In this document: positions 15,782-24,099 of the stretch, piece by piece
Numbering within the stretch: position 1 is the stretch's first letter
Layout: each line of letters begins with the position of its first letter
Assembly: GCA_029953675.1 (NCBI GenBank)
Contig: JAMWBK010000001.1
Location: 186,001 to 250,000 of the forward strand
Reading direction: 5' to 3'
DNA from: Rhodosorus marinus CCMP1338
Taxonomy: Eukaryota; Plantae; Rhodophyta
DNA length: 64,000 nucleotides
Made by a program: the position numbers and the translations under genes
The notes under the pieces: model-generated
The model's input: the letters and a program-made list of their open reading frames with translations, nothing else
What the model was told of the DNA's origin: nothing
Databases searched by the model: none

Positions 15782-17248
15782 CTAATTCTGTGCGGTGAGA
15801 GGGGTGTCAATGATACCTTCCGCTTGATCAATGATACCTTCTGCTGGTTCCTCTGTAGGTAGAGTCTCCGATTCATGAACTGGTTCTGCGTCTTCCGGCT
15901 TGGAAATGGCCCAGTATTCCATTCTGCCCTGAAAGCCGTGAGAGTCCAGAGGTCCTTTCGGCTGGCGAGGTGGGACATACCGCTTGATTGTAGGGCTCGA
16001 CAAAAATCCTACGTCGGAATCGCCTTCTTTCCACTGGGAGCGTGGTTTGGTCATCTTGTACTTGGAAAGCTGCTCCGCGCTGAGAGGTTCATGAGTCTTA
16101 TCCTCTGGTCGTTTCGATGGTTTCTTACCACGCCGTCCTCCGCGCGAGCTTTCACCGTCCCCAGACTTTCGGTCGGCTTCCTTCTGCTTCTTCCAGTCCT
16201 CCTCGAGTTGCCTGAACATCTCAATCTTTTCTGGGTCTTTTGTACAGCACATGTACTTTTCTTCATCTTCGTTCTCCACTACCCGATGGCCAAGGCCGAG
16301 CTTCTCTGCGATACGGTGGATTCTGCGCCTTTCAGGAAACTGGAGCTCCGTAGGGAAAGCATAATCAAGGCCTTCTTCATCTGGACGATCCTTGAACTCA
16401 GTGAGGATCTTCAGATACTTCTGCCCTACAGCGTCAAGGTCTTGCTCCATCGAATCACGGGAGAGGGCCTTGCTGTTCAGCCTTTTCTCCTCTTCTTCTT
16501 TCCAGACGTGTCTCAGCTCTTGATCCTTGGTGACTTGGATGACCCGCTTTCCTTCCTGGTTCTCACTGCTTCTGTGGCCCAGTTCCAAATTTTCCGCTGC
16601 ATCGTGGACGGCGCGCCTATGAAAGCTGGATAGGGTTGATGAAAACTCGTAGTATGTCTCCTCTGGATTGTTGATGAATTCGCTCAGAACTTCAGTGTAC
16701 TGTCGTACTTGCTCTTCGTACTGTTCTGCCTTTGCTTCCTTCGAAAGTTTTGGCTCCTCAAAGGGTGGACGCTTTTGCGTGCGCCAGTTCTCCTCTGTGT
16801 TCCTCTTTGGCCTCGTCGTCGTGCGCGGCGGTTTCTTCTCCCGTGGGGGCCGCTCACCAGGTTTCAGACGACGATACTCGATTCGAGTTCGCCTTCCTCC
16901 AATTTGAGCTATTTTTAAGTACCCGTGAGCTTTGATAGCGTCCTCTAGACTTCGATAATTAATGAACACCAATCCTAGAAATTTCCCCTCGGTATCGTTG
17001 TACGGAGCAAAGCTCTTAATGGGCAAGGTTCCGTCTCCGAGTCCGCGAATTTGGTCCTCTAGTAGATCAATATCGCTGTCATAGGGCAGATTCTTTATCA
17101 CGATCGTCGGATTTGGTGGAATTTCCTCGTCCGCTGTTGATGGTGTTCCGGGACTCCTGTCCTCTGCAGAATCTCTTGGGAGGTATTTACCATTACCAAA
17201 GGCTGGCAAAACCGGTACGACCGGTGGAACTTCCTCGGAACTATCCAT
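15782..17248 (-). CDS. RNA-binding protein: RRM + two R3H domains (Pin4/Cip-like architecture)
   Basis: Single 488-aa ORF. RRM with RNP2 TIVIKNLP and RNP1 FLGLVFINY; two R3H motifs (RRAVHDAAENLELGHRS, RRRIHRIAEKLGLGHRV); C-terminal PRQPKGP...GF, SUZ-C-like. Confidence 0.88.
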   Translation of the reverse strand: MDSSEEVPPVVPVLPAFGNGKYLPRDSAEDRSPGTPSTADEEIPPNPTIVIKNLPYDSDIDLLEDQIRGLGDGTLPIKSFAPYNDTEGKFLGLVFINYRSLEDAIKAHGYLKIAQIGGRRTRIEYRRLKPGERPPREKKPPRTTTRPKRNTEENWRTQKRPPFEEPKLSKEAKAEQYEEQVRQYTEVLSEFINNPEETYYEFSSTLSSFHRRAVHDAAENLELGHRSSENQEGKRVIQVTKDQELRHVWKEEEEKRLNSKALSRDSMEQDLDAVGQKYLKILTEFKDRPDEEGLDYAFPTELQFPERRRIHRIAEKLGLGHRVVENEDEEKYMCCTKDPEKIEMFRQLEEDWKKQKEADRKSGDGESSRGGRRGKKPSKRPEDKTHEPLSAEQLSKYKMTKPRSQWKEGDSDVGFLSSPTIKRYVPPRQPKGPLDSHGFQGRMEYWAISKPEDAEPVHESETLPTEEPAEGIIDQAEGIIDTPLTAQN

Positions 17249-19252: not shown

Positions 19253-22200
19253 TCAGCCAAACCTCCTCGCAGTCCTCTGGGCCTTGCTCATTGGAGTCCC
19301 TCCGGCAATGACTCGCTGAGCTGGCCTGCTAAACGACGGTGTCTGGTGTCTTCTAGCTCCTGCTTGATTTATCGCTGGCCGTGCTCCTTGAGAAGCCGTT
19401 TGAGTCTGGTCAGCTGTTGCTTCTTCACCAACTTGGACTCTGCTGCCGAATGCGTACGTAATACGCTTCGCACCCATCGGCGTAACGGGAGGCTCATTGG
19501 CTTTGCCCGCAACAGAAGCAACAGAAACTTCAGGGGCGAAGTGAACAGAGCGATGCGGTTTTGCTGAGACCAAGGAGCTCCCTAAATTAGCAGAGTGGTC
19601 CGCGTCGGGTAGATCTGAAAGTAGATTTGAAAGCTCCTGCTCAGAGTCAAACATGATCTGCAAGAAGCACATGGACATGAAAGCACAGGTACGATTGCGT
19701 GAGCTCGCTGATGATTCAAAAGGGTGGCAGATATGCAGATATGATCGACTGCGCATGCCTACCTTGGGTCTTTTATTCAAGTCAAGGTCTTTGGCGGAGA
19801 CTCCCATGGGACGCACAGACCGAATATTCACTCCGTTCTCAGTAAGCGGCCATGCAGGTGGATGTGAGCCCGTCTCCTTAGCTAATCCATTTCTTCCACT
19901 CCCGTTTGCAGCGAGTCCCGCCCTTTCGCGCTTAGAATCAGCGCTACGAAGTGGCAGACTGGGAGTTCGTATTCCCGCATCAGTAGATACGCGTTTGGTC
20001 GGCATTGGTGATCGTAGCGCAGACATAGAAGGGCCCTTCAATGTCGCACCAGAATGCAGATTTAGTTTTTTCGCACGCATAAGCTCTAACTTGAGCTCCG
20101 CTTCGCGGCTGTTAAAATCAGCTTCCATCTGAGGAAAGAAAAACGTTTCGAGACTTAGTAGCGACGAGCTAGTTCTTTACGTCATTGATCAATCATGATA
20201 CCTCTATGATCTTTTTGCTTGGGTCTTGGACCTTCGTCAGTTCGAAATTCGCCAGCTTCTCCTCCAGAGCTCGTATTTGCTCATCCTTCGAGGGGAAAGA
20301 GCTGGTAGTCCTCTCCAGGTGCGACAGCTTCTCCTCGAGCGCAACAATTTGTTCGTCTTTGAGAGCGAAAGATCTACTAGTACTCTCCAGCTTCGTCACC
20401 TGCTCCTCGAGAGCTAGAATTTGCTTATCCTTGAAGGCGGATGAATCGCTAGTCCTTTCTAGGTTCGTTATCTTCTCTTCAAGCACTCGAATTTGTTCAT
20501 CTTTCAAGGCGGAAGAACGGCCAGCTTTTTCCATGTTCGTGAGCTCCTCCCCCAGCGATTGGATTTGTTCATCCTTCATAGCAGAGGAGCGTTTCATCTC
20601 TTCAAAATTCTCTACTGTCTTCTCGAGGGCTCGAATTTGTTCATCCTTCAAAGCGAGATTAGTACGTTGGACTGCCTCGACTCGCCTAAGCTCGTTTTCC
20701 AGCTTGTCCAGTTTCTCTTGGCTCTTGGCGTTCTTCTGGAGATGTTTTTGGTTCTCATCTTGAAGGTGCTCGACCTGCTGTGAAGCACTCTCAACGGCAC
20801 GCCGCGTCTTCTCAAGGTCCTCGTGTTTTTTCGCCAGCTGCCGGTCCAAATTTTCTCGCTCTCTGTCTCCTTCAAGCACCTGGTTGCGAAGCCGCTGAAC
20901 CTTTGTCTCCAGAGTCTTTCTCTGACTTTCCTTTTCGCTGAGTTCTCTACCGAGCCTGACCAGCTCTACATTATCAGCTCGTTTCGAAGCAGCGCCAAGC
21001 TCAACCTGAACAAAATCATACAGTCGGATTGCTTCAGCGTGGTCCCTCGTACAAACTTCTCCGAGATTCGCCGAGCTTGCCAGCCAAATACCTTTGCAAC
21101 TCGGGAAGCAAAGAGCAGACTGCAGTTGGTCTCGGACTGTTCGCTCTCTTCTGGAGCTACATTTACAAACATGACAGTCTTGGAGTTACCGCCAATGCTT
21201 TCCTGCAGCAAGTAAGTCAGTTTCGAGTTTCTGAAAGGAATATGGGGTTGTCTGGAAAGAATCCCCATGAACACGTCACCAAGCGCTGCAAGCGACTTAT
21301 TTATATGCGCGGCTTCCTTGAGTCGATCGCCCACAGCGTGAGATTTTGACAGCCGCTCGGAGCCTGCCAAATCAACCTGCAAAAGAGGCAATCAAGAGCA
21401 AAGGGCGTATCAGACACAGTCGGGCGGCGATAAATAGCACTATGCACCCAACGCATATAACCGGGTACTTACCAAGTGAAGATTACCCGAGGTTCTCAGG
21501 TTCGTCAATAAGCTTCTGCTCTGGACGCGCACAGATACGATAAGATGACTGCGGGAAGACCTCTCGTTCATCGCAGTTGCGCCAGAAGCTCGATTTGAGC
21601 TGCCTTCTCTCATCAGATTCCATACCTCATTTGATGTGTGGCAGTCTACGAGCGTTAGATCAGGGATAAATACGCCATCCGGTCCTTTTTTGATTTCGAG
21701 CTTGGGCTGGACTTTGTCATTGACAAGCAAGTCTCTAAGCGTCTCGTTATATATCTCGACCATTGAAACCGAGATTTTCGTGTCGAACATATCGTTCCGT
21801 TCCTGACTTATACGGAACAGGTCCTGGAGAGCTCGAAAATTTACGCCTCGATCTTCGGGGACCCCGTTCATAGTATAGGTCTTGCCCGAGCCGGTTTGCC
21901 CGTACGCAAACACGCAGGCATTGTACCCATCCAATACAGATGTAACAACACTTGCAGTTTCTTGGTATACAGTGGATTGGCTTTCAGATACCCCGAACAC
22001 TCTGTCGAACTCGTATCGCTTCGCTCCTACGCTTATCTTTTTGTATTCACCGTTTTCTAGTCCGCCAATGTCTACGAACGCCTGACGACCGGCTTTTGGC
22101 GGTCGTATCCGGCAGAATACCCTTGATTGCCGTCCGCAACCAGGACCAGTTAGCCAGGTCGTATTTTGTGATGAAACGAAAATGTCTACACGTGTGATGT

Positions 22201-24099
22201 TGCTCACCTGATATTTCCTTTGAGTTCCTGCACCGTATTGAACAGCCGCTTTCTCTCTGACCACTCTTTTGCGTACCGGTGCTCTGCTTCTCGTCTCAGC
22301 TTTTCTTCTTCGGCAAGCCTCTGCCCTACTGTTTCAAGCGCAGCAAGCTTTTCCTGCAGTGTAGCCCTTAGGGAATCCAGCTCCTGCTGCAGACCATCAT
22401 TCTCCGGTCCAACTGTGTGGGCTTCGTCAAGAAGCCCTCTCGCCTCTTGTAGAGCAAATTCAAGCTGTCTGCGTGCTTCGCTCGATGACTCCCGCTCCTC
22501 TTCGAAAAACTCGACGTAATCAGAGACAACCATTCGAACGTTGTCCAGCTCATCAAATAGGTTCGTAATGGGCTGATTTACCGAGATCTTCAAGGAACTC
22601 AGACGAAGATTGACATCTGCGATCTGCTCCCGAATTCCCTCAATGGCAATCTATCCCGTCAGGACGTAAGGTTGGCAACGGAAGAACATCAGAAAATTGT
22701 CTCCGCTGACAGAACACGAAACAAGCGAATATGGGTACTGGACATTTTCATACCTGGTCCTTGGATGGCGAGCTGCCACCTGCAGGTTTCATCATCGACT
22801 TGGCCCGCAACGCAGCTATTTCACGTTCTTTATCCCTTGCGAGCTTTCTAGCTGCTTGAAGAGAGCTTTGCAGCTCCGTAATTCGACCTCGATGGCTCTT
22901 GGACTCCCAAATGTCCTCCTCGTGGGGGATACTCCCCTCCAAACCGCAGAGACCAGGAGAGCTAGTCTCTGTCGAGTCCTCGTCTTCGTCGAGTACCTTC
23001 AGGAAACTCCTGAGTCTGCTTACGGGTGTTCCTATTCCGGACTCAATGATACTGTATTCACCATTAGCCGCAGATCGGTTTCGACTGGGAGTCATTGTCA
23101 ATTGTTTTCTTGCTTCCGGGCGACTGGGTGTTCTGTCAATGCTGTCTATTATCTGCACAGATCTGTCAGCCTCGCTTGCCAGATTCACTTTTCGCAATGT
23201 AGTCGACTCCCAGCATCTTTTCTTGCTATTGTCGTCGATGCAGATGTATTTGTACTCGATATTTTCAACATCATCCAATTCCACTTCCAGCTCCCAGTCT
23301 CCTTTCCACAGCCCTTCGAAAGGAGCCTGGGCCGTCTTCTTCTGCATTCGTATTGCACTGTCCTCCTTCCATGATCCAAGAGCAACCCCAGCCCCAACCG
23401 CATACACTGTGACGTCGTCGTTGGAAAGATAGTTCGTCTTAAATAGCACCCTGTAAGTCTGCGGTGAATCGACTTCTTCTTCCTCCGGCTGTTTATGAAA
23501 CGCATTGCTGCGTCTCCTAGAGGCATTCCTCCCGGCTCCGACTCCGCCAACAGGTATCAGTTTTATTGAGTAGTTGTTCTCATGATTGAGCCAATTCACT
23601 TTGTTGCTGTGGAAGCTCCACAGCCGGAAGAGCGTTTCATCGGAAATGGTTACCTGAATTTATCACAGGAACGCCAAAGAGCATTCGTAAGCATCCAATT
23701 TGATCGAAGAAAAGGGATCCAGGAACATGAATCTGGTTTCCGTACCTTCACCAAGGCCCATGATGCACTCCAGCCTTTTCCGTCGTGGCGGATCGTGATG
23801 TTTAAAAGGTTGCCAACGAAGGGAGCGCTAAAGGCAACCTCTGTTACGCTACCCCGCAGAAGCTCTCCGTGCGTTAGCGGAATTTCTTCTGTTGTCCTAC
23901 AGTCTCCGACCATGGTTAAGTAAACTTGAGCGTCGGTTCCTCCCCATCGCGCATCTCCTGTTTGCAGGGTAACGGAATACCGGTGCATTTCACTAGATAC
24001 ATTCCCAGAATCTTCAGCACCACGGTCCCTCATGCTACCACTTTCTCCTCGCTCCGGGGTCCTCAAACTTGGACTCCCCATCGCCGACGAGTCAGTCAT
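19253..24099 (-). CDS. Kinesin-14 family motor with N-terminal PLAT/LH2 and CBM20 (starch-binding) domains and a coiled-coil repeat tail
   Basis: Exons 24099-23747, 23653-22754, 22650-22208, 22121-21473, 21376-21092, 21005-20202 and 20128-19253 (one further probable in-frame intron) join by GT-AG with matching phase. Motor motifs [37 protein letters not shown]; kinesin-14 neck [20 protein letters not shown]. Confidence 0.93.
20229..20660 (-). repeat. Six tandem 72-nt (24-aa) coding repeats in the kinesin tail, consensus SAxKDEQIxALEEKxxNLExxxxS
   Basis: KDEQ/KDKQ-encoding blocks recur at 72-nt spacing (approx. 20280, 20352, 20424, 20496, 20568, 20640). Confidence 0.9.

Follow-up and report, generated by a model that had tools for sequence, protein, structure and literature searches.

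A red-algal kinesin-14 with PLAT and CBM20 starch-binding domains: a candidate motor or tether for starch granules

INTRODUCTION

What might a microtubule motor do with a starch-binding domain? The question is raised by a gene of the unicellular red alga Rhodosorus marinus CCMP1338, located in a 64,000-nucleotide (nt) stretch of contig JAMWBK010000001.1 (positions 186,001 to 250,000 of the forward strand; assembly GCA_029953675.1), referred to here as the window. The starting point was a chain of open reading frames (ORFs) with short gaps between them, on the minus strand at 24099–19253. A first-pass annotation had read this chain as a kinesin-14 fused to a PLAT and a CBM20 domain, and had proposed that the protein carries, positions or tethers starch granules. 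We find that PLAT, CBM20, coiled coil and kinesin-14 motor are encoded by a single expressed gene and one mRNA, that this architecture is conserved among red algae, and that the protein is a candidate for a motor that engages starch directly.

Motors are known to reach their cargo via membranes, adaptors or other cytoskeletal filaments. CBM20 domains bind alpha-glucans, and PLAT domains make contact with membranes, lipids or proteins. Kinesin-14s move to microtubule minus ends; singly they are non-processive, but they can transport cargo if clustered. Red-algal starch is cytosolic, hence reachable by microtubule motors.

RESULTS

A single gene encodes the tail and the motor

Joining the reading frames at GT–AG boundaries gave a coding sequence of 8 exons and 4206 nt on the minus strand (24099–19253), specifying 1401 amino acids (aa). 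Exon 1 (24099–23746, 354 nt) and exon 2 (23653–22754, 900 nt) are followed by exons at 22650–22208, 22121–21473, 21376–21092, 21005–20202, 20128–19763 and 19657–19253. The intervening introns, at 23745–23654, 22753–22651, 22207–22122, 21472–21377, 21091–21006, 20201–20129 and 19762–19658, are all GT–AG and range from 73 to 105 nt, the last being the longest. Introns 1 and 2 are in phase 0, because exons 1 and 2 are 354 and 900 nt long. The first-pass annotation had described these two introns correctly as to boundary type and phase, but had placed the donor of intron 1 at 23746, one base off the true position of 23745. The full model adds five further introns, and its protein continues for 520 aa beyond the motor.

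This model differs from NCBI gene model NDN08_005066 in the choice of start codon alone. A search with the first 920 aa retrieved the corresponding entry, ‘hypothetical protein NDN08_005066 [Rhodosorus marinus]’ (P0002), which is 1395 aa long, matches our model at 100% identity and starts at the second methionine (24081). The ATG at 24099 is the first start codon past an in-frame stop. Since the MMETSP transcriptome peptide of another Rhodosorus strain begins MTDASMGSPS, we favor the ATG at 24099 over the NCBI start.

A domain combination of this kind can arise when adjacent genes, here a PLAT–CBM20 gene and a kinesin gene, are wrongly merged in annotation. Two features of the sequence would suit such an artefact: the unspliced frame of exon 2 meets a stop six bases into intron 2, and ORF callers break the orthologous locus on Logan contig L001 (run SRR22824290) into separate pieces. 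Yet the transcript data argue against it. The MMETSP0011 peptide of the other Rhodosorus strain, 1377 aa long, bears the same four Pfam domains as the window protein and is collinear with it, at 86% identity from end to end and 91% across the first 920 aa. Together with its cluster mate P0162, it reproduces all seven splice junctions residue for residue, and transcriptome peptides of 1377–1382 aa cross the critical junction exactly, the CBM20 exon being joined to the stalk as KD(Q/L)|IAIEG. The PLAT and CBM20 exons are thus joined to the coiled coil and motor, as the first-pass annotation had assumed.

The genomic sequence leads to the same conclusion. Directly upstream of exon 3 lies an in-frame TAG, which is part of the splice acceptor, and exon 3 contains no ATG before aa 458. 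The 39 codons ahead of that ATG (aa 419–457) are conserved in the L001 orthologue. Exon 3 must therefore splice to the upstream CBM20 exon. The 5.7-kb L001 contig itself encodes an orthologue at 43–67% identity, with the same domain order and five intron positions in common; its spliced product (1220 aa) has the same four Pfam domains, with CBM20 at 52.8 bits. Moreover, a complete transcript ORF of Agarophyton has the same architecture, and the same fusion occurs in at least 16 proteins. Lacking an upstream ATG in exon 3 and contradicted by transcript peptides at every junction, the merged-gene explanation was rejected; we regard it as effectively refuted.

Gene structure varies somewhat among relatives. 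L001 (4059–4586) is without the window's intron 5 (21006–21091; SRVAK|VELGAAS), so an intron has been gained or lost since these related red algae diverged. Intron 7 is in frame and stop-free. Its orthologue seems to be kept in MMETSP isoform P0163, whereas the other isoforms and the NCBI model splice it.

The N-terminal tail pairs a PLAT domain with a CBM20 domain

The PLAT/LH2 domain (23561–23979, aa 41–149) matches Pfam PF01477 at 46.6 bits (E 6.6e-12), above the curated cut-off of 23, in keeping with its earlier assignment. It is split by intron 1 (23745–23654) at aa 118/119. CBM20 follows at 23162–23452 (aa 186–282). Its match to PF00686 is likewise above cut-off (40.2 bits versus 23.3; E 3e-10), and the motifs LGSW, EYKY and CWE on which the domain had originally been recognized are all present.

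Between the two domains lies a basic linker of 14 residues (23498–23539, aa 157–170), conserved in a 12-sequence family alignment. The family consensus, P-x-G-x-V-x-AGRRASRRxS, resembles an RRxS phosphorylation site and the sites of basophilic kinases, so the linker may be a regulatory switch.

We modeled aa 36–296 with AlphaFold2 (AF2), using the 12-sequence family alignment, and obtained a pLDDT of 87.3 and a pTM of 0.84. An earlier run on a 3-sequence alignment had given a pLDDT of 39 and was discarded. The predicted PLAT fold matches the PLAT domains of 5-LOX, 8R-LOX, pancreatic lipase, lipoprotein lipase (LPL) and Rab6IP1, with root-mean-square deviations (rmsd) of about 1.9–2.7 Å over ∼113–123 aligned columns and sequence identities of 13–24%. 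The window protein has one such PLAT, fused to a motor. The predicted CBM20 fold matches that of Hypocrea glucoamylase (2vn4; rmsd 2.5 Å, 113 columns, 23% identity), and the cyclodextrin glucanotransferase (CGTase) 4jcm was also matched. The linker is predicted to be helical (model residues 125–135). Given the pTM, the model suggests that PLAT, linker helix and CBM20 form one rigid unit.

To map sugar-binding residues, we used the starch-binding domain of Aspergillus niger glucoamylase (1AC0) as reference. We take W543, K578 and W590 of that enzyme to form starch-binding site 1, and W563 to be structural. Their counterparts in the window protein are W213 (in LGSW, 23380–23369), K253 (in EYKY, 23257–23246), W266 (in CWES, 23215–23204) and W238, respectively, so the site-1 triad is complete. 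It is complete in L001 and in Galdieria as well; in Porphyridium, the lysine and second tryptophan are kept and phenylalanine stands at the first position. Across the family, the first position is tryptophan in 15 of the 16 members and phenylalanine in the other.

The motor is a kinesin-14

Downstream of CBM20, a low-complexity linker (aa 283–372) leads into the stalk coiled coil (aa about 373–555), which we assigned from composition and position; this region (22240–23161) crosses intron 2. The neck and motor occupy 20979–22239 and span introns 3, 4 and 5. The neck is an 18-residue segment (aa 556–573), with a 14-residue kinesin-14 signature within aa 550–573, on the N-terminal side of the motor, and the motor extends to aa about 886. 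As is typical of kinesin-14s, the putative coiled-coil helix leads into a GN-IRV(F/Y)CR(V/I)RP junction here. An ELxGNIRV[FY]CRxRP neck precedes the motor in 15 of the 16 full-length members of the family.

That the locus encodes a complete kinesin-14 motor, as first claimed, is borne out by several comparisons. Pfam Kinesin (PF00225) covers aa 594–877 at 341 bits, versus a cut-off of 29.3, and Microtub_bd (PF16796), which models the neck and the N-terminal part of the motor, covers aa 546–698 at 147 bits, versus 27. The scores of all four Pfam domains lie well outside what chance would give. The P-loop (GQTGSGKT, 21901–21878, aa 640), switch I (SSRSH, 21559–21545, aa 754) and switch II (DLAGSE, 21373–21356, aa 784) are all intact. 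The best PDB matches are all kinesin-14s: KIFC3 at 292 bits, KCBP at 287 and 280, Ncd at 250 and Kar3 at 231. Matches to kinesin-1 and kinesin-2 score lower, at about 213–218 bits.

The transport-type kinesin-14s KIFC3 and KCBP outscore the spindle motors Ncd, Kar3 and KIFC1. This order hints that the motor is of the transport type (14B) rather than the spindle type (14A). On the same ground, a purely mitotic kinesin-14A identity was considered and rated less likely.

After the motor comes a second coiled coil of roughly 280 aa (20054–20978, aa about 887–1170). It contains six tandem 24-aa repeats with a KDEQI core (about 20666–20235, aa about 991–1134), which TRF reports as a 72-nt period in 4.6 copies at 20248–20578. 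How many repeats there are differs within the species complex, with one fewer in the MMETSP Rhodosorus strain, and the corresponding region of L001 is much shorter. The protein ends in a basic tail rich in Ser, Pro and Arg (19256–20053, aa 1171–1401), which contains the optionally retained intron 7. Two tail motifs, one of 11 residues at 19471–19439 (family form AKRxxYAFGSR) and RPAQRVIAG at 19327–19301 (family form RPAQRV), are kept from Galdieria to florideophyte-like members in a 16-member C-terminal alignment; the rest of the tail is divergent and looks disordered. These motifs possibly bind a partner, or give the protein a second contact with microtubules.

The fusion is conserved among red algae

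Orthologues with the same domain order had been suggested as worth seeking in rhodophytes, and they were found; with Rhodosorus itself, the family covers four red-algal classes: Cyanidiophyceae, Porphyridiophyceae, Stylonematophyceae and Florideophyceae. We used HMMER to search a PLAT+CBM20 profile against 1.84 billion representative proteins. The matches were mostly multi-PLAT repeat proteins. From the matches we picked 14 further proteins of 680–1590 aa with one to three matched stretches. All 14 contain both CBM_20 and a kinesin motor, and most have PLAT above cut-off. CBM_20 scores in the family run from 22.8 to 64 bits and exceed the cut-off in 13 of the 14. Members include proteins of Galdieria partita (GJQ13818.1), Porphyridium purpureum (KAA8492972.1, automatically named KIN-14S) and Agarophyton chilense (GEZJ01002213/CAN8063899.1, the complete transcript ORF), and a JGI metagenome protein with the product name ‘Kinesin motor domain/Starch binding domain/PLAT/LH2 domain’. 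The architecture is also found on about ten environmental or SRA contigs. Because the fusion spans four classes, it is probably ancestral to red algae. A word-indexed protein search, run with the N-terminal 418 aa and with a 12-sequence profile, matched a single homologue, P0001; the profile run missed the NCBI protein of the window gene as well as the known Galdieria and Porphyridium members, so this search is uninformative on distribution.

R. marinus has a second paralogue (A0A7S3EEJ2/A0A7S2ZSI9, here P0149/P0159) of 905–987 aa, with a PLAT-like domain, CBM20 and kinesin motor. It lacks the canonical GNIRV neck, and the CBM_20 score of P0149 is 22.8 bits, versus a cut-off of 23.3.

DISCUSSION

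A possible role at the starch granule

On balance, we lean towards a role in which this kinesin-14 attaches directly to cytosolic starch granules and moves, gathers or anchors them on microtubules. The protein would probably dimerize through the stalk coiled coil, with the compact PLAT+CBM20 pair at the distal N-terminal end and the long coiled coil and basic tail after the motor. The aromatic platform of CBM20 site 1 would hold alpha-glucan chains on the surface of the floridean starch granule, while PLAT would add a membrane, lipid or protein contact, probably linking granules to membrane. The motor would bind microtubules and pull towards their minus ends. With many weakly bound, individually non-processive motors clustered on its surface, a granule would then be moved, gathered with others or anchored, and that surface would provide the multivalency that a low-affinity carbohydrate-binding module (CBM) and non-processive motors need. 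This might happen around the nucleus or plastid, or in granule partitioning at division. Red algae reportedly lack dynein, a role that such a motor could fill. The conserved site-1 residues, the CBM20 fold match and the cytosolic location of red-algal starch all agree with a granule motor or tether.

A broader proposal is more tentative, though plausible: that this is an ancient, lineage-wide red-algal motor that recognizes a polysaccharide granule directly through its CBM, with no membrane or adaptor, and that a crowd of such motors transports, clusters and partitions floridean starch or glycogen granules under regulation through the RRxS linker.

Several points weigh against a starch-granule role. 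The site-1 lysine position is K in only 6 of the 16 members and R in 3. The second site-1 tryptophan is W in about half of them, is mostly F or Y otherwise, and is lost in some; the orthologues with a changed residue here are probably florideophytes. Given this variation, some members of the family may bind glucan weakly or no longer at all. Nor is site 2 retained, the equivalents of Y527 and Y556 being D and K, but site 2 is degenerate in several bona fide CBM20s too, and membership of CBM20 is not excluded by it. Starch need not be the sole or main cargo, given PLAT and the conserved C-terminal motifs, and there are kinesin-14s that transport nothing and act as static cross-linkers. The results above show the gene structure, transcript, domain identities, predicted folds, kinesin-14 affinity and red-algal conservation; that the protein dimerizes, binds glucan and moves in the direction proposed, what it carries and how motors cluster are inferences.

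Two other functions must be weighed against granule attachment. The main job of the protein might lie elsewhere, with CBM20 as a regulatory or parking module: it might organize microtubules, or use PLAT to position a membrane organelle such as the plastid, nucleus, endoplasmic reticulum or lipid droplet. CBM20 would then sense soluble or granular glucan, much as the AMPK beta CBM does, or hold the motor on granules, and motor activity would in this way be coupled to carbon status. PLAT, which is no less conserved than CBM20, stands closest to the N-terminus, and the conserved motifs near the C-terminus suggest further partners. The conserved RRxS-rich linker helix, together with the pTM that suggests one rigid unit, would suit an allosteric or phospho-regulated switch. 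However, the stalk holds the PLAT+CBM20 pair at the end away from the motor, which is the classical cargo-binding position, and we know of no CBM-regulated motor. The near-invariant first tryptophan of site 1 indicates selection for carbohydrate contact, but does not separate cargo from sensor. We consider this alternative unlikely.

It is also conceivable that CBM20 no longer binds carbohydrate and is instead a protein–protein interaction module or a purely structural beta-sandwich, in an ordinary kinesin-14 (a spindle motor or cross-linker) with a lineage-specific tail. The absence of site 2, the variable lysine and second aromatic of site 1, and the modest CBM_20 scores, with paralogue P0149 just under the cut-off, would all fit a degenerate domain. 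Against this stand the complete site-1 triads of the window protein, L001 and Galdieria, the F/Lys/Trp set of Porphyridium, and the first tryptophan of nearly every member. The family has apparently been retained across the whole breadth of red algae, and its motor resembles KIFC3 and KCBP more than it does the spindle-type motors Ncd, Kar3 and KIFC1. We judge such degeneration to be quite improbable.

Relation to known motors and starch-binding proteins

The plant kinesins KCH and KCBP resemble the window protein in running from a binding domain through a coiled coil to a kinesin-14 neck and motor, and in KCH, as in the window protein, the motor is internal, with another coiled coil after it. 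Their tails differ: PLAT and CBM20 take the place of the actin-binding calponin-homology (CH) domain of KCH and the MyTH4-FERM region of KCBP. Unlike the cargo of these plant motors, the presumed cargo here is a membrane-free polysaccharide granule, bound without an adaptor. KCBP is the second-best PDB match of the window motor; no calmodulin-binding helix was found in the window protein. Lineages that lack cytoplasmic dynein use KCH and KCBP for minus-end transport, and KCBP in clusters moves organelles processively. The best solved-structure match, animal KIFC3 (kinesin-14B), is a minus-end organelle motor. It has neither PLAT nor CBM20, and its motor is C-terminal with no long post-motor extension.

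Among starch- and glycogen-binding proteins, the animal proteins STBD1 (genethonin-1, non-enzymatic) and laforin (a phosphatase) also use CBM20 to direct a cytosolic protein to an alpha-glucan particle, in their case glycogen. Both are without a motor; the partner of CBM20 is a transmembrane/Atg8-interacting region in STBD1 and a dual-specificity phosphatase in laforin. STBD1 tethers glycogen to membranes, a parallel to the pairing of PLAT with CBM20. PTST1–3 (with CBM48) and SAGA1 of Chlamydomonas (with CBM20), which target starch in green plastids, place a starch-binding module on a long coiled coil, as does the window protein; through this design a partner activity reaches the surface of the granule, or granules are given their shape. 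Being plastid proteins without a motor, they recruit enzymes in trans, while the window protein would be cytosolic and has its motor fused in cis.

The first-pass annotation knew of no described kinesin with a CBM. This holds for the searchable literature, in which we found no publication tying kinesin or microtubules to CBM20, starch-binding, carbohydrate-binding module or floridean starch; a passing mention in papers on the red-algal cytoskeleton is possible. In databases, however, such proteins are already present with automatic domain labels or uninformative names: hypothetical protein, kinesin motor domain-containing protein, KIN-14S and the JGI string of domain names. The sequences were thus already public; what is new is the recognition of a conserved red-algal PLAT–CBM20–kinesin-14 family and the hypothesis that results from it.

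If true, direct binding of a storage polysaccharide by a motor tail would be a new class of cargo recognition, and this would be the first motor known with a carbohydrate as cargo ligand. It would also help to explain how carbon stores are organized in cells that lack dynein and, in many cases, myosin too; work on the Porphyra genome reportedly found red algae to have a very reduced motor set. The family offers a concrete, testable candidate for granule positioning and partitioning from Cyanidiophyceae to Florideophyceae. Starch granules, microtubules and one protein would make a simple in vitro system for studying teams of non-processive kinesin-14 motors, and a starch-binding motor is possibly useful as a tool.

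Neighboring sequences

The 1.4 kb ahead of the kinesin start codon contain no sizeable ORF with a Pfam match, and no tie to starch metabolism was found among the neighboring ORFs in the window. The adjoining ORF on the other side (15782–17248, minus strand) is intronless and lies about 2 kb from the kinesin stop codon. It encodes a 488-aa RNA-binding protein with an R3H domain (52.8 bits) and an RRM (RRM_1, 20.6 bits versus a cut-off of 20.7).

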